Shown here: positions 3,975-24,310 of the stretch, piece by piece | Numbering within the stretch: position 1 is the stretch's first letter | Layout: the number at the start of each line of letters is the position of its first letter | Assembly (NCBI GenBank): GCA_048013815.1 | Contig: CM106585.1 | Location: 2,914,001-2,978,000, forward strand | Length of the DNA: 64,000 bases | Origin: Setoptus koraiensis | Taxonomy: Eukaryota > Animalia > Arthropoda | Direction: 5' to 3' | Notes under the pieces: model-generated | What the model was told of the DNA's origin: nothing | Seen by the model: only the letters and a program-made list of their open reading frames with translations | Databases searched by the model: none | Position numbers and translations under genes: made by a program

Positions 3975-5478
3975 TGGGCAAATCACGAGTGCTTTTACAA
4001 CTGCATCATTGGCTAAATGGAACCAAGATTCGCATCATCGCTGCCATTGCGTATCACACCGATATAGGTCACACAAAAGGCCCATTGAACAGGTGAGCAA
4101 GCTTTATTTGGTGCAATATACGTAATAATGCGTAATAATGCGTAATACGGTAGTACGGTTTGTGTTTGTGGCGGCAATTGCGCCCAATCGAGAGTAGAGG
4201 GCGCTGAAATGACAAAGAAAATAAAATAAAGTAAAAATCCTCAGCCTTTTATCTTGACTATTTTTTCTTGTCAGAAAATTGTTGTGACAAACAGTGTCTA
4301 CTTAGCTGGCGAAAGGTTTATCCTATCGACATACTATTCGCATAAAGCAATAGTGTAGGCACTAGTAATAAGATAATAATAGTGCTAAATAAAAATAATC
4401 ACTCACTAATAATAGTGTGTTCACCGTGTGTCTGACTTTGTTTATTTAGCTCGTTGTGGCAAGCTCACTTGTAACGTTCAATTGACTAGTCAAATTGGAG
4501 CATTCATATAGTTTAATCATATGATATGTGGCCAATGTGTGCGGCTTATACGCGACCATACTACTACTTTTAGGCATATATACACTTTTAGGCATATATA
4601 TACTTTCAGGCAGCAGCCAGCAAGGAAGTGTTGCGGTGAACGGTGGGTCAACATGAAAGACACGCCAGGTTGACTTTTAATACAATACCTGTGTACAACA
4701 GCAGTATAGGACATGGCCGCATCGTTATATTTACATTACAACATAATAATAACCGTTACATGCACATGATATAACTAGTTACAAAGCTCGCCAAGCTCGC
4801 CAAGCAACAAAGGTGAGCCGGTGTGTTGGGGGCCCGATATAGAAAATGGTGCTAGTGAATGCTTTATTATGTCAGTTGAGTATTATTCTAATTTATAAAT
4901 ATCATCATTTTTATAAACATCATTTTCGGTTCCTCAACCATAACTCATTGGCGATTGTGATTCGCATGCGGGCCAGCTCTTGATCGCGGCCACCACAAAA
5001 AGACGCGGCCAGCTACCTGGCGGCTGGCGACTGGCGGCCGTTTTGTGTGTGGCTGTACAAGTAAATGGATACAAGTTTCGAAGGCCACCTAAAGGTGTGT
5101 TTGTGTACCTATTTAGCCGTGTACAGGCGGCCCATTGGACGGTGTTATTGTTCATTGTAAACTAAACCTGAACAACGCACCTGAACAACGCCAACAAGTA
5201 ACGGGTTGGCAAGGGATTCGCGGCCATTTATGAGGCGCCTCGACAGGCACGGCCAGCCGAACCGAGTGAAGTGATGCGCGCGTTGAGTCGTTAGGCTAAA
5301 TGGGGCGCCAACACACACATGATGATGGATCATGTAAATGCCGGCTGCAAATGTTGGCCGCATGAAAGCGGTTTTGGGCCATTTGTTGTAGCAATGTTGT
5401 GTGTATGTATTATATACGGATATTTGCAATGCACACACATTTATCGGGATATTTGCGGCACACACACAACACTGACTG

Positions 5479-5533
5479 CCGACAAACCACCGACAAACCA
5501 CCGACAAACCACCGACAAACCACCGACAAACCA
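5479..5533. repeat. Tandem repeat, 11 bp x5 (CCGACAAACCA)
   Basis: Five perfect copies read directly. Confidence 0.9.
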
Positions 5534-6494
5534 CATGAGCTCACAGTGTATTTTGTCCGACGCTGGCGCTGCGCAGCGAGAGCGCAGCAAATTATAATCG
5601 AATGTCACGCCAATAATCTAATCAAAGCTGGCAATATTTAATGAATATCAACCAGCTGAGGCCCCCAATGACATGTGTGCACCTGTGCCCTGATCGATTA
5701 TGGGTGGGCTCCTTGCAGGCACGGTTGCAGTGGCACGGGTTGGCTGGCGATGGCTGCATTTAGCCAGCCAGCCAGCCAGCCAGCCAGCCAGTGACATGCA
5801 AGTGTCCGGCGTTGCGCCCCTCGTTTCCATGGGCGCCCAATCATTTTATTTCATCGCTCCTTTTTGCGCCTCGCCACACCAAGACACACCGACTTGTTTG
5901 TGACCTATAAATATATAAATATTTTTGTGTATAAATATAAACTTTACATGTATAGCAATATAAAGAGAATAAAGAGAGCGAGTCTTTGTTTTATGTTTGT
6001 AACAAGCGCTCCTTTGTATGAGCAAGTGATTATGTAACGACGGCGCAATCGATGATCAATGCACACCGTGAGCATATATGCACACTGTTGGTGTGTGTGT
6101 GTCATTGTGGTTATAAATATTCACAAGTCGGCTGCGAATTGGAGCCTCCAAGGTGACACTTGACGGCACGCGTAAATTAATTATCGACGCTTGTTATTTT
6201 ATTCAATTTTCGCCTCTTAACAGCGGCGGCTTCCATCAGTTTCATGTGTGTCTTTACTTTACTCTCTCATAGACTATGAGTCATAGTCATCACACGCGAC
6301 ACACAATAGAGCGGGCGACACAGCGAAACCGGAAGTGGCAATGGCCAGATAAGATGAAACAGCAGTTTGGCCGGTGGGCCAATGTGACAGTAGTAACGTA
6401 TTGCACAATTTGCAGCCGGTTTAGCGTGGCCGAACCGGCCAAACTGACTCAAGCGGCGCACGTATGCAGATGAGTCTAGCCAGATGACATGTGT

Positions 6495-13253: not shown

Positions 13254-15402
13254 TGGGTCTAAGCAACGGCGACTTGATGGCGAACACACAAAACAAAAAT
13301 GGTGGTGGTAGCCGTCCCATGGTCGCTGTCCATAGACCGTGCACTGCCACAGTGTGTGCTCTATGGTCTATGGCGGCGTGTGCTGCGGGACCATAGTGCA
13401 CCGAGCCGCAGACACGCACACGCGTGTTACGTAACCGGCGCTAGCTCGCCGCCACTAGCGACAGAAACATGAGAGATCCGTCGAGCTAACTAAAGCCAGC
13501 GGCCCACTCGGGCTAAACTATGCAAGCGCTTGTGTGTCGGCGCCATTACCATGCTGGCGTATATTATTCGCCCATTATCAGCCAGATTCGTTCCATGTGT
13601 GCGTTATGTGTCGCTGGCTGGCTGGCTGGCTGGATGCTCGCTTGCATCGCATGTCGTTGCCATCGAGTCGCCGCCACCGAGTCGCCGCCACCGAGTCGCT
13701 GCCATCGGGTCGCTGCCATTGGGTCGCTGCCGGGCTGCTGGCCGGCCCGCGCCAGGCGAGCCGACTAATCGAGCGGCCCATTGACTCGCCAACTACCCAC
13801 ACACAGGCGGCCCGGAGCACGAGCTACCTGGACACAGCCGCGACAACAAGGTACCCCGCGCGGCCCACAATCTGCTGTCAGTGACTGGCAGTAGATTATA
13901 ATTGAGCTAGCGAATGGGGGCACCTGAGCGGGCCGCGCCACAGTGCTTGCGCCGTCATTGTTAGATAACTATAGCAACTATACAATGTACTGCTGTTGCC
14001 GCTGTAGGCCAACTGTAACCGTGCCATTTGTTACCGGATCGATGCCACGAGCCGGCTGTGTGTGTGTGTGTGTGTGTCTGAGTCGGACTCTAACATGCCC
14101 ACAATTGATCTGTTCGATTTGAATCTTTAATCACGACTGATCTTATCTCGATCGGGCGCCCTTTATTTATAGTATTGGCCTATTTGCATATATTTTACAT
14201 ATTTTGCACGCTGCAAGCCGCTTGTGCAGCCACAAGATCGTTGTCGCTGTTTTTCAATTAGTCAGCGCTTTTTAGCTCGCCAGTCTGGCCCGTGAGTCAC
14301 TGCCGATATACTCATAACAAGTTGCATGTGTGTGCGCGCCAAACTTAATGCTGCTGCTGCTGCACCTGATGCCAGACGGTTGCCAGAGCGATATCACATG
14401 GGGCCCGGCCGCTGTTGTTGTCGCTGTTGTTGTCGCTGTTGTTGTTGCTGCTGTTGTCGTTGCTGTTGTTGTTGTTGGCCATTGTGAGGGCGCATATTGC
14501 TGGCTGTGCTTGTGTGTACAGACTCAAGACGACGGGTGTGTGTGTGTGTGTGTGTTGTCGTGTCTTTATGGCGACATTGACTGGCCATAAAACACACACA
14601 CGCACACACAAGAGTGCAACTAATAACGGTTTGCGGCCATCGAGCCAGCGAACATCGAGCCAGCGAACAAGCAACTAATCATCATTGAAGACAACAACAT
14701 GACACCCTTTGATGCAAGATAATCTTCATCGTTGACGCACAAACACGCGCTGCGCCAGCAAACGGGGCCACGCAACGCGCATGCACGCGCAAAGATGCGA
14801 GTTAGTTAGCTAGATTGAGTTAAACGTGAGCTCGCTTTCGCTGATGGCTCATTGGCCGGTGCGGCCGGCCACTGGTCAGCGCCAACAGGGCTAGCAAAGC
14901 CAGTGTCGTATGCACAATATGTTGTATATTGGCTGTTGGATCAAGTTATCGTTGCCAGCGTCGCCAGTGTTGCCGGTGTTGGCTTCACAAGCGGCGGCCC
15001 CCGGCAAGCGCAAACTTTTTACTTTTAGCGCCACTTGCTAATCGAGCCAGCAAGTGATCGATCTGCAGCGATCGGCGTGCTTGCTCGTTAGTCTTGGCCA
15101 GTTTGCGTAGCTGACCACACTCAATTGCGCCACCAGGCAAAGACATCGAGTTGGCTATTGTTACTGTCGTCGGCGCGCTGTTGTCGTCGGCCTGTTGTTG
15201 TCGTCGGCGTGCCAGCCACTCGATTGGGGCTGGCGAGTTAATTAATTAACTTTTTTTTTCAGGCACACGACGCACACGCACGACACACGCGCTGAGCCAA
15301 GCAATCACGATCAATGGCGAGATTGGTGTTAGAAGTAGCCAGCGGTCAGTGGTGGGTCTGACTCGAACAGCGACTCGCCGCCACGAGCTGGCCGAACCGT
15401 AG

Positions 15403-15472
15403 TGAGCCGGCCCGACCGTGTTGAGCCGGCCCGACCTTGTTGAGCCGGCCCGACTGCAGTGAGCCGGGCCGG
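15403..15472. repeat. Tandem repeat, 19 bp x about 3.7 (TGAGCCGGCCCGAC...)
   Basis: Units start at 15403, 15422, 15441 and 15460. Confidence 0.8.
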
Positions 15473-16031
15473 CATCAGCGGGGAGGGGGCAGCAAAAGGT
15501 GGACAATTAACAAGCGATAATAGCAGGTGTTGTATGGCCCCAGTTGCAGTATTCAAACGAGCGCCACCAAGACCAGACTTTGTGCGTGCGTGTGCGTGTG
15601 TGTGCGTGTGTGTGTGTGTGGCCATTATACAACAGACAGTCTGTGGTGCAGAGTTGATGTTGCAGAGTGTGTGCATTTGAGTCGCTGCGAGTCAAGTCGG
15701 TGGTTGAGCCAGCGAGACGCAGCGCGACAGAGCCAACTTGGAGCGCGAGCAAATTTCGAGAGCGACAGCGAATTTAGAGAGCGAATTTGGGGAGCGAATT
15801 TGGAGAGCGAATTCGCAGAGCGAGAGGCAGCGAATTTGGAGAGCGGCGGTCGCAATTTCAATAGTCGTCGAATAAAACTAAATATAAAAACACGGAGAGT
15901 GTCGAATATCGCTAGTGTCAAGGGTATTCTATATTTGTTGTCGGTTGTTGGGCATTTTGAGCGGCTGCGGCGGCGGCGCTACACGCACACTTGCGCCTGT
16001 ATTATGTGCTGCTGCAGTATTTATACTTGCA

Positions 16032-16062
<31 letters not shown>

Positions 16063-17411
16063 TGCGGTGCTGCTGCACCACTGTGCACCACCACGCTACA
16101 CAACGCGCACACAGTGAATGTGAATTACGTTGCATGTCGGTGGTTATTCAGTTAGTTCGCTCAGTTAGTCGTTGTCATGGGCGCCTCGCCTGAAGCCATC
16201 GCCATCGCCGCCGCCAACAGCCGCCGCACCACTACTGTTGTTAGCTGTAACTGGCCAACGCCGATTTGACGATTCGCTATTAATTGTTGTTATTATTTAC
16301 GACATGTACCATTTATTTATTCCTTTAAATTTCTGCTATTATTATATTAATTATTTATTTACTGCTCGCCAGCCGCACCGCTCACTGCTACTCATTGCTG
16401 CCTTGGTTAACATCGCCGGCCACAACTAACCCGCGACATCAAGATCAACAAGAGCAACAATTGAACAACAACAACAACAACAACAACCACCGCTACATGT
16501 ACGTGCAGTGCACACTTTATTCACACACCAAAACCAGCAAAATCACTACAGCCAATAAGCATCAACACGATGAGGCCTCCTGTTAACTGATTCGATCATT
16601 ATTATTATTGCATTATTTTGTTGTTTTGTTTTAAACCGCATACTGCACGGCATCACCACACATCATCATCAAACGGCAACACAGCAACAATCTACCCAAT
16701 GGTTACCTCACAATAAACACGAGCCTTGCAACAGCGGCTCACCAATCCACTGCTATCGTCGTTGTTTTGATACACGATTTACATTGATATCGCCATCATC
16801 GTAATCATTGTCATCATCATCATCGCCATCGTTCCTCACAAATCGTTCCTCACGAATCGTTCCTCACAAATCGCCCCGCTGCTAATCGCATCCATGCTGC
16901 ATCGCATCATACACGATATCGTATAATGCTGCTAATTGCCCCTGTAAATTAAATCATTTCATCACTCGAGCACCCACCAAAACATCACATTGTTGTACCA
17001 ATACCAATAACTGTGCGTTCATTGCAGCCACCGCCGCTCTCTCGAATCACAACAACAACAACAACACTCACAAGCTACTCAGGTAGGGCGTGCCGTGCAG
17101 GTGAAGTGACGAACAAGTTGCTGCAGTAACCACCACAGTCGCAAGCAAACAGCAACAGTGGCACCGCTACAGTGTGTTCTCTTCTTTTAAGCAGCAAGCA
17201 TCCAATCGAAAGACAACTTACTGGCACTATCCATCTGGCTGCAACTTTAGCCATACTATTGGCCATAGTATTTGCTAATATTGCCACTGTTACCACTGCT
17301 ATTCAATTTTAACATCATCAGTTCTGATATTATCATCTTTATTATTATTATCATTATTATTAGCATCATCATCATTATCATTATCATTAGCGACAAAATC
17401 ACCGTATCACC

Positions 17412-20400
17412 ATGGACTTGCACCATTTTAACACACACAATTCAAGCCTATCGCGACTCAGGGGCACCATAGACGATGACACGGGCAGCTATCAATTGGC
17501 TGTCTCTCCAGAAGTGCCAGATGATGGCCTAACAGTTGACGGAAAACCACGTGCAATGAGGCTAACATCATCAATGGAACAATCATCTCATATTAATCAT
17601 AATGATAAATTACGTCACTATCATAATAGTAATCATAATAACCATAATCATAAAACTAAAAGAAATAGACATACTATTGAAGAATTAAAAAAAGAAGTTA
17701 CCTCCGATTTACACAAGATACCATTAGCTCAACTAGTTGATCAGCTACAAACTGATCTAGAGAATGGACTAACGCCGGAACAGGCCAACGAAATCTGGCT
17801 TAGGGACGGACCAAATCATCTAACTGATGTTAGAAGTACACCGGAATGGGTTAAATTCTGTAGAAATCTATTTGGAGGCTTTGCTGCACTTTTATGGATT
17901 GGGGCGGCACTGTGTTTCTTTGCCTTCTCTATTCAAGTTACAACATTTGAATATGCCTCACCAGATAACTTATACTTGGGTATTGTGCTATTATTTGTTG
18001 TTGTTGTCACTGGTCTATTTTCATATTATCAAGAAGCCAAAAGTTGTCAAATTATGGAATCATTTAAAAATTTAGTACCCCAATATGCTACAGTTGTCAG
18101 AGGTGGCATTAAAAAGAAGATACCTGTAGAGGACGTTGTTATGGGAGATTTAGTTGAAGTTAGTTACGGCGATAGAATACCAGCTGATTTTAGAATAACG
18201 CGAGCCTTACAATTTAAAGTAGACAATTCATCGCTCACGGGAGAATCGGAACCTCAGACCCGCATAACTGAGTCAACAAACGACAATCCTCTCGAAACAA
18301 AAAATCTCGCCTTCATGTCAACTAATTGTGTCGAAGGCAAAGGCATGGGAATAGTTGTAGCAACTGGCGATGATTCTGTTATGGGCCGAATAGCAGGACT
18401 TGCTGCCGGCATACAAGGCGGCGAGACACCAATGGCTCGAGAGATAGAACATTTTATTCACGTTATAACATCTGTTGCCGTTGTCACAGGTGTGGTATTT
18501 TTCTTTTTATCATTCTCTTTAGGTTACCATTGGGTCGACTCGGCTGTGTTCCTAATTGGTATTATAGTGGCTAATGTTCCAGAAGGTCTTCTAGCTACAG
18601 TTTGCGTTGCGCTAACACTGACAGCTAAGAGAATGGCAAAGAAAAATTGCCTAGTGAAGAATCTGGAGGCTGTGGAAACACTTGGATCTACATCTACAAT
18701 TTGCTCAGATAAGACAGGAACATTGACACAAAATCGTATGACAGTTTCTCATCTTTGGTTTGATAATCAGATCGTGGACGCAGAGACAGCAACATCGGCA
18801 GTGATGCCATCAACAACTGACGAAACCGAACGTCAGATGATGCTTGGCGGCGGCGACATCGGGGCATCTGGCGGATCATATGAGGACACTTTTGGCAGTA
18901 TGACATTCGACAAATCATCCATTGGTTGGAAGAATCTGTCGAGATGTGCCTGTCTGTGTAGTAGATCTGATTTCGTTGGAGACCAATTACATTTACCTAT
19001 ACTTAAGAGGGCGTGCAATAGTGATGCATCTGAGGCAGCTATTTTAAAATGTATGGAAATCAATGTGGGGAATGTTATGAAATACAGAAAAAATTATCCC
19101 AAGGTAGCAGAGTTGGCCTTCAATTCTACAAACAAATTTCATGTCACAATACACGAACTACCCAAAAAGAATAACGATGATCCAATGAATAATTTCGACA
19201 CAGAGGATGCCGATTATTTGTTGTGCATGAAAGGTGCACCCGAAAGAGTTTTCAATATGTGCGGAACAATTGTCATCAACGGCAAAGAGAAAGTTTTAGA
19301 TCACAATTGGAAAAAATTATTTGATAATGCCTATGATGAACTAGGTGGAATGGGTGAGCGCGTCATTGGGTTCTGTGACCTATTGCTACCTAAGAGCAAA
19401 TATCCCAAAGGATTCGCCTTCGATAGTGAACGTGTCAACTTCCCCTTAGAGAATTTGCGATTTTTAGGATTAATGTCAATGATCGACCCTCCAAGAGCTG
19501 CCGTCCCAGATGCTGTGCTCAAATGCCGTAGTGCAGGTATAAAAATAATTATGATCACAGGTGATCATCCTATAACAGCAAAAGCAATAGCACGTTCCGT
19601 GGGAATTATTTCCGAATCATCCGAAACTGTAGAAGAGATCGCTCTTCGTTTGGATATACCAGTTGAACAAGTAGACAAGAGACAGGCCAAAGCTGTCGTA
19701 GTGCACGGACAACAACTCCCCGGCATGAATAATGACGAGCTTGACGAAGTTTTAGCTACACATGACGAAATAGTATTTGCTCGCACTTCACCCCAACAAA
19801 AACTAATCATTGTGGAGGGATGTCAGCGCTTGGGTGCTATTGTGGCAGTCACAGGAGATGGTGTAAATGACTCGCCGGCATTAAAAAAGGCTGACATAGG
19901 TATATCGATGGGAATTACTGGCAGTGACGTCACCAAACAGGCTGCCGATATGATTTTATTAGATGATAACTTTGCTTCAATTGTTACAGGCGTTGAAGAG
20001 GGACGACTTATTTTTGACAATTTAAAAAAATCCATCGCCTATACATTAGCAAGTAATGTACCAGAACTAGCACCATTCCTTATGTTTATAACATTTGGTA
20101 TACCGCATGCACTAGGCACAGTCACTATATTGTGTATTGATTTGGGCACCGACGTATTACCTGCTATATCACTGGCCTACGAAAAAGCCGAGAGTGACAT
20201 TATGAAGCGACGACCACGTAATACACTCGAGGATCGACTAGTTAATAGCAGATTAATATCCATGTCTTATTGGCAGGTTGGGGTATTTCAGGCATCAGCA
20301 GGATTTTTTGTCTATGCTGTTATAATGATTGAGAATGGTTTTTGGATTTCTAGACTCCTCAATATTCGATTATTTTGGGAATCGAAAGCAATCAATGATC

Positions 20401-20981
20401 TAGAGGACAGCTATGGCCAAGAATGGACTTACAACGAACGTAAAGTACTAGAATTTACATGCCATACAGCATTCTTTGTCACTATTGTTGTTGTTCAGTG
20501 GTTTGTTCTACTTGTATGCAAAACTCGACGAAATAGTTTGTTTCAGCAGGGAATAGAGTAAGTAAATGGGTAGTTTACTTTGAGCAGTACAGAAATTCAC
20601 AGGATCATCATTAACCTAGCTATCTGTTTTTCTTTACAACTAAATCTTGATTGATAACAGCAATCATGTTTTGAACTTCGGAATATTTTTCGAAACAGCA
20701 CTAGCTGCTTTCTTGTCCTACACACCAGGAACAGAGACAGCATTGCGGATGTATCCACTAAGGTAAATTTGAGTAATCACCATTGCGCTAAATAAGATCT
20801 ACATATCTCTCTAAAACCTGAACTTATCTCTAAGCTAATTTTGTTTTCTTGTTTCGATAGATTGGAGTGGTGGTTATGGCCTATACCCTTCGGAATCATA
20901 GTATTTATCTATGACGAAGTTAGAAAATTCATACTCCGGCGTAACCCTAAAGGATGGGTGGAACGAGAGACCTATTATTGA
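17412..20981 (+). CDS. Atpalpha: Na+/K+-transporting P2C ATPase alpha subunit (divergent), about 1122 aa; exons 17412-20557, 20661-20762, 20861-20981
   Basis: Motifs [50 protein letters not shown] and ILCIDLGTD. Two phase-2 GT-AG introns restore ...[28 protein letters not shown]...MYPLR LEWW...GWVERETYY*, the canonical Na/K-pump C-terminus. Confidence 0.97.
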
Positions 20982-22644: not shown

Positions 22645-24310
22645 ATGATCAACATAATGAGAATGAGTTGTGAAAGACAAAGACTAGACGAAAAGTCAAC
22701 AAACGTGGACAGTGATGGTGAGTTAGAATTACTAGTCAGGAAAACTATAGCCACTATTGATTGGGACTATGTCATAAATCGTGATGCAACGATTAAACGT
22801 CTAGACAAGTGTCATAATAAGCCGTCAACACTTAATAAAAAGTGTCAGCCGAAGAGGCCAATGAATCCTTTCATGGTAAGTTCAAATCAGACTAAACTGA
22901 TTGATTTGCCAATAAACCATTTACGCATTACATAACATGTAAACTAATGCTTCTCATAAAATTAGTTGTGGACTCAAGCCATACGAAGGAAGCTATCGGA
23001 GCAGTATTCGAACATTCGTAATGCTCAACTAAGTAAAACACTCGGACGTATGTGGAGGTGAGCGACAATTAAAGAGATAAACAGTGATGGGGTACATCAA
23101 CTAATGAGATAGAGATATTTAAGTCTGATCAAGTTTCCATTGCGATCTTTTAACATGATCGCAAAATCACTTGACAAGACATCCGAAAGGGTGTCTAATA
23201 ACTGATCTAATTGCTTTCTTGCCCCAATTTGAGCACGTGTACGTTTTAACGTGTGAGCTATATATAGCTAGCATAATCTTTTTTCTTTCTATCTAATCTC
23301 TTTAAACCAATAACCAACAATCCACCTAGTAATATGGATTATGAACTCAGAAGGCCTTATCTGGAGGAGGCTGAAAGGATCAGAGTTATACACAAGATTA
23401 ACTATCCGAAATACAGAGTAAGCTGAATATATGATATATGTACCTTTGAGTTGTGTTCTCAAACTCAAGCTGCACCTCTAAGACTTGTATTTTGTTCGTT
23501 ATAGCAATGCACTATCGGATGTCTTTGCAATTTATTTGAATAAATCTTTGATCTGTTTCTCTTAAAATTTACACTAACCTTTTTGGGGTTAAATTTAAAC
23601 AGTATCAACCAAGGAGGCGGGCTAAAAGGGCTGAGGCCAAACCAAAACGCTTTTCAGGTATTAACAATCATGAAATTCGTTTTGAGTGCAACAAGGGCAT
23701 GGAGCAAAGTCACGACAATGAGCCTATGTCTGGCCATTCGGAGGGCAGAGATAGTCAGCTACCAGATTATCGAATGAGAATGCATGTCAACTACATGAAG
23801 GCAAATCCGGATAGTATTGTCGTCCATGAGTCCGCCTGGATAACCGATGGGAGCGACAGTGATGTAGTTCATTGTTATCCAGAGAACATCTCTCATTTTG
23901 AGGATCGAATCGAACTTGGGTGTGTAGTAAGTGGACAAAGAGAGCATCAGAATATCCCCATATCCTGCTTCGGTGGTTTTGGATGGGATTCACAACGGTC
24001 GGAAACAAATTACCATGGAGAACACCAAAATAATAATACAATGATCAAACAATGCAGATGCACCTCAGAGAATCCGGTACAATCGAATATCGATTCATTA
24101 GTTTACTCATATCAAAGTAACGAAAGCGATTACCATAATAGGCCAACGTCCGGTACCATCCAAAAATATATCAACAACCAAAACAACGTCCTTATGATGC
24201 AGACACCAAACGCTAGCGAGCTTTGTAATGGAGAGTATCACGACCAGATTATGGACGATTATCAACAACTGGCCCAGATCAATTCATCTCGTCCGATGAC
24301 AAATCATTAA
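22645..24310 (+). CDS. SoxE: Sox HMG-box transcription factor, most like SoxE; exons 22645-22875, 22966-23057, 23330-23417, 23603-24310
   Basis: GT-AG splicing assembles KRPMNPFM|[31 protein letters not shown]|[29 protein letters not shown]|YQPRRRAK. Upstream [14 protein letters not shown] resembles the SoxE dimerisation segment (..VLKGYDWTLV). The exact start ATG and the subgroup are uncertain. Confidence 0.85.

Follow-up and report, generated by a model that had tools for sequence, protein, structure and literature searches.

The window analysed here, a 64,000-nucleotide stretch of DNA from Setoptus koraiensis (GenBank assembly GCA_048013815.1, contig CM106585.1, positions 2,914,001 to 2,978,000 of the forward strand), carries on its plus strand, at 17412-20981, a gene for the alpha subunit of a Na,K-ATPase in which the third Na+ binding site (site III) is altered at three positions. 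Three exons were recognised from the translation of the open reading frame and from the splice sites. Alanine takes the place of T774 in transmembrane helix M5, phenylalanine and valine take the places of A925 and D926 in M8 (pig numbering), and the residues that form sites I and II are unchanged. The same replacements are shared by all members of a clade of eriophyoid mite pumps, hereafter clade A. We consider it moderately likely that these genes encode a functional, selectively maintained alpha paralogue specific to eriophyoids, in which site III has been dismantled and which most likely carries out an electroneutral exchange of 2Na+:2K+. That site III no longer binds Na+, and which stoichiometry results, we infer by analogy to mutant pumps that have been studied; any adaptive link to the lifestyle of the mites would likewise be an inference.

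Cation-binding residues

Residue numbers of the pig enzyme are obtained by subtracting 106 from those of the query, following the HMMER alignment to the PDB chain 8jbk_A. For M5 this alignment sets YTLASNVPE in the window against YTLTSNIPE in 8jbk_A, hence I777V occurs besides T774A; for M8 it sets QWFVLL against QWADLV, A925F being a bulky aromatic residue that adjoins the lost carboxylate of D926. A preliminary description of this stretch, made from its letters, had reported T774A and D926V, and both are borne out by the codons (Table 1) and by the phmmer alignment. Its list of intact residues (E327, Y771, S775, N776, E779, D804, D808, Q923, C930, and the ETYY tail) likewise agrees with the alignment, where W924 and E954 are kept as well. 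Its statement that the reading frame is uninterrupted has to be corrected, since two introns precede the two small 3' exons that encode the last 74 codons of the gene. Compared to the canonical alpha1 pumps of pig and shark (3WGU, 8JBK, 2ZXE), to which the protein is about 65% identical over its full length, the domains, the catalytic motifs, sites I and II, the SYGQ motif, and the ETYY tail are common to both; clade A differs by T774A, A925F, and D926V in site III, by T334C and C336A in M4, and by G848W in M7.

Clade A comprises 26 clusters, namely the 25 closest database proteins and one more that was recovered by a search restricted to M5-M8. A774, F925, V926, C334, and A336 are carried by all 26. 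The ligands of sites I and II (V322, A323, V325, E327, T772, S775, N776, E779, D804, and D808) are identical in 25/25 clade A sequences, and so is the residue set of site III, where T774A, A925F, and D926V are accompanied by unchanged Y771, Q923, W924, C930, and E954. In canonical pumps site III is supported or gated by W924, C930, E954, the ETYY tail, and R933/R934, and clade A retains them all. Its membrane helices, aligned with those of canonical pumps, show no acidic residue that is new. Among 130 canonical pumps, position 774 is Thr in 98% (versus Ala in 25/25 of clade A) and position 926 is Asp in 100% (versus 25/25 of clade A with Phe925 and Val926). Position 926 is furthermore acidic (Asp or Glu) in about 210 other animal pumps and in 75 other metagenomic loci, the sole exception being D926N in an ostracod. 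Loss of the 926 carboxylate (to Asn, in the ostracod) and T774A (in the metagenomic locus L076) thus each also occur outside the eriophyoids; the combination A774/F925/V926 without a tethered cation was in this survey encountered only in eriophyoids. The ostracod protein, P0165 of Darwinula stevensoni (1246 aa; the gene model probably fuses tandem copies), has an M5 lysine like that of the H,K-ATPases (YTLTKNMTE) together with D926N (QWANL).

E953F was considered as a third loss in site III and was discarded: canonical arthropod pumps have Val or Phe at this position, and E954 is kept. Elsewhere in the membrane domain, G848W (M7) occurs in all of clade A, G966W in 23/25, and M967T in 24/25 of its sequences. 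The part of M7 near G848 touches the transmembrane helix of the beta subunit, and subunit pairing may be altered in clade A.

Reality of the codons

Both codons reappear in data from two independent studies. The contig obtained from run X1 is identical to the gene, both codons included (0 differences), and the contig from run X3 differs from it at one position, which is intronic, with both codons matching. These two contigs, and the presence of the same residues in 26 orthologue clusters, rule out an assembly or sequencing error. Run X1 also holds a second collinear contig (record 4, 3829 nt), which is about 80% alike over positions 18652-20554 of the window and has a depth of 18 against 119 for the main contig; most simply, it is a clade A orthologue from another eriophyoid species in the sample.

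Distribution, phylogeny and selection

The 25 database proteins closest to the window protein are 71-99% identical to it, and among them only those of the eriophyoid mites Fragariocoptes setiger and Aceria tosichella bear a species name. All others derive from Logan, JGI, and ENA contigs, and their database entries carry generic names only. Both substitutions of the preliminary description occur together in every one of the 26 eriophyoid clusters. In the maximum-likelihood tree clade A is monophyletic (support 100) and nested within the acariform Na,K-ATPase clade; its stem is the longest branch of the family tree, with 0.62 changes per site. The first split within clade A separates the window species and F. 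setiger from the Aceria-type sequences. As the substitutions are present in all of clade A, their fixation predates the deepest split sampled among the Eriophyoidea. Eriophyoids have Triassic fossils, and the state with an altered site III is probably very old. Our search of the literature on eriophyoid Na,K-ATPase found no publication.

A gene with an HMG-box follows the pump gene in the window (Table 1), and also in the contigs L001 to L003 and L085; its synteny in three other species supports an orthologous locus. Local gene order is conserved in spite of saturated synonymous divergence. In L001 (HMG-box at 14766-15140) and L085 (HMG-box at 5200-5544) a MATH-BTB gene comes next, in the same order.

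Codons were compared between five species, represented by the window, F. setiger (L084), L001, L004, and L085. In this alignment the proportion of synonymous differences (pS) is 0.82-0.89, i.e. saturated, as against a proportion of nonsynonymous differences (pN) of 0.075-0.17. The key codons differ only synonymously: Ala774 is encoded by GCA, GCC, or GCT; Val926 by GTT or GTG; Cys334 by TGC or TGT; and Ala336 by GCG, GCA, or GCT. Saturated synonymous sites, little protein change, and key codons that vary only synonymously together mean that these residues are under selection, and on this codon evidence the site III replacements are kept by purifying selection and are not drifting. A pseudogene or retrocopy was also considered, and is ruled out by pN being far below pS, by the synonymous-only key codons, and by the kept synteny and introns. 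The presence of the two 3' introns varies independently between the species: the window gene has both, F. setiger has the first only, L001 and L004 have the second only, and L085 has neither. The A. tosichella entry comes from UniRef only and has no genomic contig on record, which suggests that it is of transcript origin.

Other alpha paralogues of eriophyoids

Clade A is accompanied by further alpha genes. A metagenome contig of 61 kb (Ga0058701_10000138), whose sample also yielded a clade A orthologue, carries an intronless alpha gene (L050:2974-6114), and P0122, the second alpha of F. setiger, shares 87% identity with its product; a third F. setiger alpha is P0126. The six sequences of clades B and C (P0121-P0126) all have D926E (in QWAEL or QWSEL), C802W, L330I, H912Q, and R934T, and they keep T774 and the canonical M4. 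Their tails read ETNY in clade B and ETYF in clade C, versus ETYY, and N122D in the H1-H2 loop is found in clade B and in the F. setiger protein of clade C. Clades B and C keep a carboxylate at position 926 and probably have a functional third site. In the tree, clade A, clades B and C together, and a paralogue of Dinothrombium form a trichotomy, the enclosing node having a support of 94.

Judging from these sequences, eriophyoids have at least three alpha genes, none seen with Asp926, and no eriophyoid pump is strictly canonical. A canonical paralogue was looked for in the wake of the preliminary description, and the paralogues that came to light are those of clades B and C with their D926E, none of them canonical. 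A search for paralogues by aligning contigs at 80% likeness gave only SERCA-like and flippase-like P-type ATPases (matching in the DKTGT stretch) and an orthologue from a second species.

Comparison with pumps of altered ion binding

In the Na,K-ATPase, the Na+-coordinating side chains of site III come from Q923 and D926; neutralisation of D926 abolishes the binding of Na+ at this site, and can yield a pump that is electroneutral yet Na+-dependent (PMC9463140). In alpha3, D923N lowers the Na+ affinity more than 100-fold and leaves the K+ affinity unaltered (PMC9463140). In the engineered mutant C930R (rat C932R, Holm et al. 2017, as described in PMC9463140) a salt bridge neutralises D926, and the pump is electroneutral and still depends on Na+. 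C930R and clade A have in common that the charge of D926 is lost and that sites I and II are kept, and in the mutant the binding of Na+ at site III is lost; it would be the closest functional analogue of clade A and the best functional model for it. The two differ in that C930R keeps the Asp, salt-bridged by the introduced Arg, whereas clade A has Val926, keeps C930, and fills the site with hydrophobic Phe and Ala; and clade A is natural and anciently fixed, while C930R is engineered. Mutants of S777 with bulky substituents, in which sites I and III are expected to be blocked, are still phosphorylated from ATP, from which their authors conclude that Na+ at site II alone triggers phosphorylation (PMC10812997).

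Nature has altered the ion sites of related pumps in other ways. The gastric and non-gastric H,K-ATPases (ATP4A, ATP12A) are P2C pumps without a working site III that perform electroneutral exchange (PMC9463140). In these enzymes Q923 and D926 persist and the site is switched off by Arg930, Ile924, and the tethered Lys775, where clade A has C930, W924, and S775. The alpha2KK of Artemia (PDB 8K1L) is a natural isoform with altered ion sites for which 2Na+:1K+ was measured, a ratio interpreted as allowing steeper Na+ gradients (PMC10756188). In Artemia and Daphnia alike, alpha2KK has Lys at N324 and N776 and keeps every residue of site III (PMC10756188); clade A is the opposite, with N324 and N776 invariant and site III residues replaced. 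Fish isoforms of the K785 type fall into the same group of Lys-substituted pumps with reduced stoichiometry, which is recognised by Lys at N324, N776, or both, and to which clade A does not belong. The preliminary description held that the mite pump had taken a route distinct from both the H,K-ATPases and the Artemia isoform, and rightly so, Lys775, Ile924, and Arg930 as well as Lys324 and Lys776 being absent. The human mutation ATP1A3 D923N, which causes rapid-onset dystonia-parkinsonism, neutralises the same Asp as in clade A. There, however, one pathogenic mutation sits in a pump that is canonical in all other respects, whereas clade A has fixed its change under selection and, along with it, dozens of substitutions that co-evolved.

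A further parallel is offered by the alpha1a isoform of the freshwater salmonid gill, for which Jorgensen (2008, J Membr Biol 223:37) names 'lysine, valine and serine substitutions' that are argued to lower the Na+:ATP ratio. A natural precedent for the change from aspartate to valine may exist in this isoform. Its valine reportedly replaces the M8 Asp equivalent to D926, which would be the same change as in clade A. The salmonid isoform reportedly has a lysine in M5 as well, and a serine in place of the M9 Glu, whereas N776 and E954 are unchanged in clade A, where A925F and T774A come in addition.

Ion stoichiometry and alternative explanations

In clade A, site III has lost its sole carboxylate (D926V) and the M5 hydroxyl (T774A) and has gained bulk (A925F). 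In the mechanism that we propose as most likely, the pump would occlude two cytoplasmic Na+ instead of three and trade them for two K+. Such a cycle would be electroneutral, would be free of the proton leak through site III, and would permit each ATP to sustain a steeper Na+ gradient. To place the substitutions in context, the ion pocket was taken as the 19 residues listed in PMC5233988 as lying within 5 Å of the three bound Na+. Seventeen of them, every ligand of sites I and II included, are unchanged in all of clade A, and the other two, T774 and D926, are residues of the site III cavity, which in rat numbering includes Y773, S777, T776, D810, and D928 (PMC6746705). As background served 598 alignment columns with a conservation of at least 95% across the 130 canonical pumps; at 49 of these (8%), and at 21 of the 191 that lie in membrane helices (11%), all of clade A shares another residue.

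Several points weigh against an electroneutral pump with two Na+ sites, or against the weight that can be placed on its evidence. Changes are not enriched in the ion pocket, as 2 out of 19 matches the transmembrane background of 11%, and in mere number the joint loss of T774 and D926 is therefore no more than chance predicts. T774A carries little weight alone, because a pump of 58% identity (L076:469-3486, metagenome contig Ga0314769_1000903) reads YTLASNVPE, with T774A and I777V, but has kept QWADL. Single mutations that neutralise D926 in mammalian pumps mostly cripple activation by Na+ and give no clean 2:2 pump (PMC9463140), so that compensating changes must be present in the mite pump. 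Site III is moreover a loose cavity, in which Q923A and Q923G mutants even gain Na+ affinity (PMC6746705), and the retained ETYY tail, R933/R934, W924, C930, and E954, with known roles that centre on site III, are as compatible with its remodelling as with its deletion. Being one of at least three alpha paralogues, the clade A protein need not be the housekeeping pump. Run X18, the library type of which was guessed, yielded contigs with 87-91% identity to the gene. One of these contigs is without both introns, joining 20551 to 20661 and 20760 to 20859 (cut +2). It is not counted as proof of transcription, since it may be genomic DNA of a relative: three species lack intron 1 in their genomic DNA, and two lack intron 2. 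The argument of the preliminary description, that the joint loss of T774 and D926 suggests an altered pump, accordingly stands in part: both are replaced by non-ligating residues that are fixed and selected, but their co-occurrence does not rise above background. In the alignments at hand, the significance lies in which residues changed and in their being shared by all 26 clusters, which together with the invariant D926 of the 130 canonical pumps exceeds chance, not in how many they are.

It is improbable that the pump still works at 3Na+:2K+, with a remodelled site III that would bind Na+ through Y771, S775, D808, Q923, E954, main-chain carbonyls, and water, and with substitutions that would tune affinity or voltage dependence. 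The other cavity residues and the C-terminal control apparatus (ETYY, R933, W924, C930, E954) are conserved as such a pump would have them, and the cavity fits Na+ loosely enough for removal of the Q923 side chain to raise the Na+ affinity (PMC6746705). D926, however, is the coordinating carboxylate of the site, and its neutralisation makes the Na+ affinity more than 100-fold lower or abolishes site III binding (PMC9463140); Phe925 adds bulk and no compensating acidic residue is gained, and Asp or Glu at 926 is otherwise universal in the survey, except for the ostracod D926N with its H,K-ATPase-like Lys. A change of ion is likewise unlikely. Here the cytoplasmic sites would take H+ as well as Na+, or H+ only, and clade A would be an arthropod analogue of the non-gastric H+/K+-ATPase, exporting H+ or a mixture of Na+ and H+ and importing K+, a mode that could suit a feeder on K+-rich, Na+-poor plant cell contents. 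Both Na+ and H+ can activate mutants of the non-gastric enzyme that combine Ser or Ala at the position of Lys794 with a dead site III (PMC9463140), and clade A has this very combination in S775 without D926. Against it, strict H+ selectivity has been proposed to need a tethered Lys at site I (PMC9463140), which clade A does not have, and the Na,K-ATPase mutant C930R is strictly Na+-dependent, a property attributed to Trp924 (PMC9463140), which clade A keeps.

We regard it as very unlikely that the protein serves a non-pumping role, in the assembly of junctions or scaffolds or in signalling, with a site III that is free to decay. Clade A is one of at least three alpha paralogues and sits on the longest stem branch (0.62 changes per site), and pump-independent junctional roles of the Na,K-ATPase, known in Drosophila, count in favour of such a role. 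A non-transporter should nevertheless have relaxed the catalytic motifs, all ligands of sites I and II, and SYGQ, which are invariant throughout the clade, and the site III replacements are frozen and not drifting. Practically no credence can be given to erroneous codons or a decaying retrocopy: the great length of exon 1 and of the stem branch could be cited in favour, yet the X1 and X3 contigs, the 26 orthologue clusters, the strong purifying selection, the synteny, and the two retained introns all speak against it. More tentatively than the two-site pump itself, a re-engineering that embraces the whole lineage may be envisaged. Clade A would have become a natural electroneutral 2Na+:2K+ (or Na+/H+-promiscuous) pump by hydrophobic plugging, beside clades B and C with their D926E and altered C-terminal tails; this would be a third natural route to an altered P2C stoichiometry, possibly tied to extreme miniaturisation or to a K+-rich, Na+-poor diet of plant cells.

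Gene structure and neighbourhood

The coordinates of the gene, of the codons discussed above, and of the downstream neighbour are collected in Table 1. Five Pfam domains are present in the protein: Cation_ATPase_N, E1-E2_ATPase, Cation_ATPase, Hydrolase, and Cation_ATPase_C. In phmmer comparisons with PDB chains the best matches are Na,K-ATPase alpha1 (8jbk_A and 3wgu_A, E=0, 1384 bits), and the scores to the H,K-ATPase (ATP12A) and to SERCA are about 1197 and 340 bits, respectively. The translation contains the P-type core motifs TGES and DKTGT (the phosphorylation site), which are invariant in the clade A alignment, and also the beta-binding SYGQ motif of the M7-M8 loop, invariant across the whole of clade A, and the C-terminal RETYY tail. 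Q111 and N122 are present in the H1-H2 loop. By every structural criterion that can be read from its residues, except the residue set of site III, the window protein is a Na,K-ATPase alpha subunit. The DNA upstream of the gene (15250-16200 of the window) is rich in (CA)n/(TG)n microsatellites and has several long chance open reading frames on both strands, rich in Thr-His and Cys-Val.

Table 1. Features of the pump gene and its downstream neighbour (window coordinates)
Feature	Coordinates	Strand	Remarks
Open reading frame (program list)	17412..20561	+	translates as Na,K-ATPase alpha
Exon 1	17412..20557	+	start codon to M8 and start of M8-M9 loop; codons 1-1048 plus two bases; donor GA/GTAAGT
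Codons 398-400	18603..18611	+	TGC GTT GCG, Cys-Val-Ala; T334C and C336A in M4 (TVCVALT vs TVTVCLT)
Codon 880	20049..20051	+	GCA, Ala at pig T774 (M5, site III cavity)
Codon 954	20271..20273	+	TGG, Trp at pig G848 (M7); diagnostic of clade A
Codons 1031-1032	20502..20507	+	TTT GTT, Phe-Val at pig A925-D926 (M8); GTT (residue 1032) at 20505-20507
Intron 1	20558..20660	+	103 nt, GT..AG
Exon 2	20661..20762	+	M9 including MYPLR; E954 retained
Intron 2	20763..20860	+	98 nt, GT..AG
Exon 3	20861..20981	+	M10 and C-terminal tail, WVERETYY, then stop codon
HMG-box open reading frame	22645..22935	+	downstream of pump gene

Significance

The role of site III in the 3:2 stoichiometry, in ion selectivity, in voltage dependence, and in the proton leak has been studied almost wholly in disease-related or engineered mutants, most of them crippled. 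Natural Na,K-ATPase isoforms with altered ion sites are already known, and to these clade A, as its residues read, adds the hydrophobic filling of site III. If the proposed mechanism is true, clade A would provide electrophysiology and cryo-electron microscopy with a healthy natural 'two-site' Na,K-ATPase, and its 49 co-fixed substitutions would be candidate compensations for cycling without a third Na+. Eriophyoids include major crop pests, and a divergent essential pump may be of interest to acaricide research. The mites would also add a terrestrial, plant-feeding case to the animals that alter the stoichiometry of this pump, so far the brine shrimp and, by proposal, freshwater fish.

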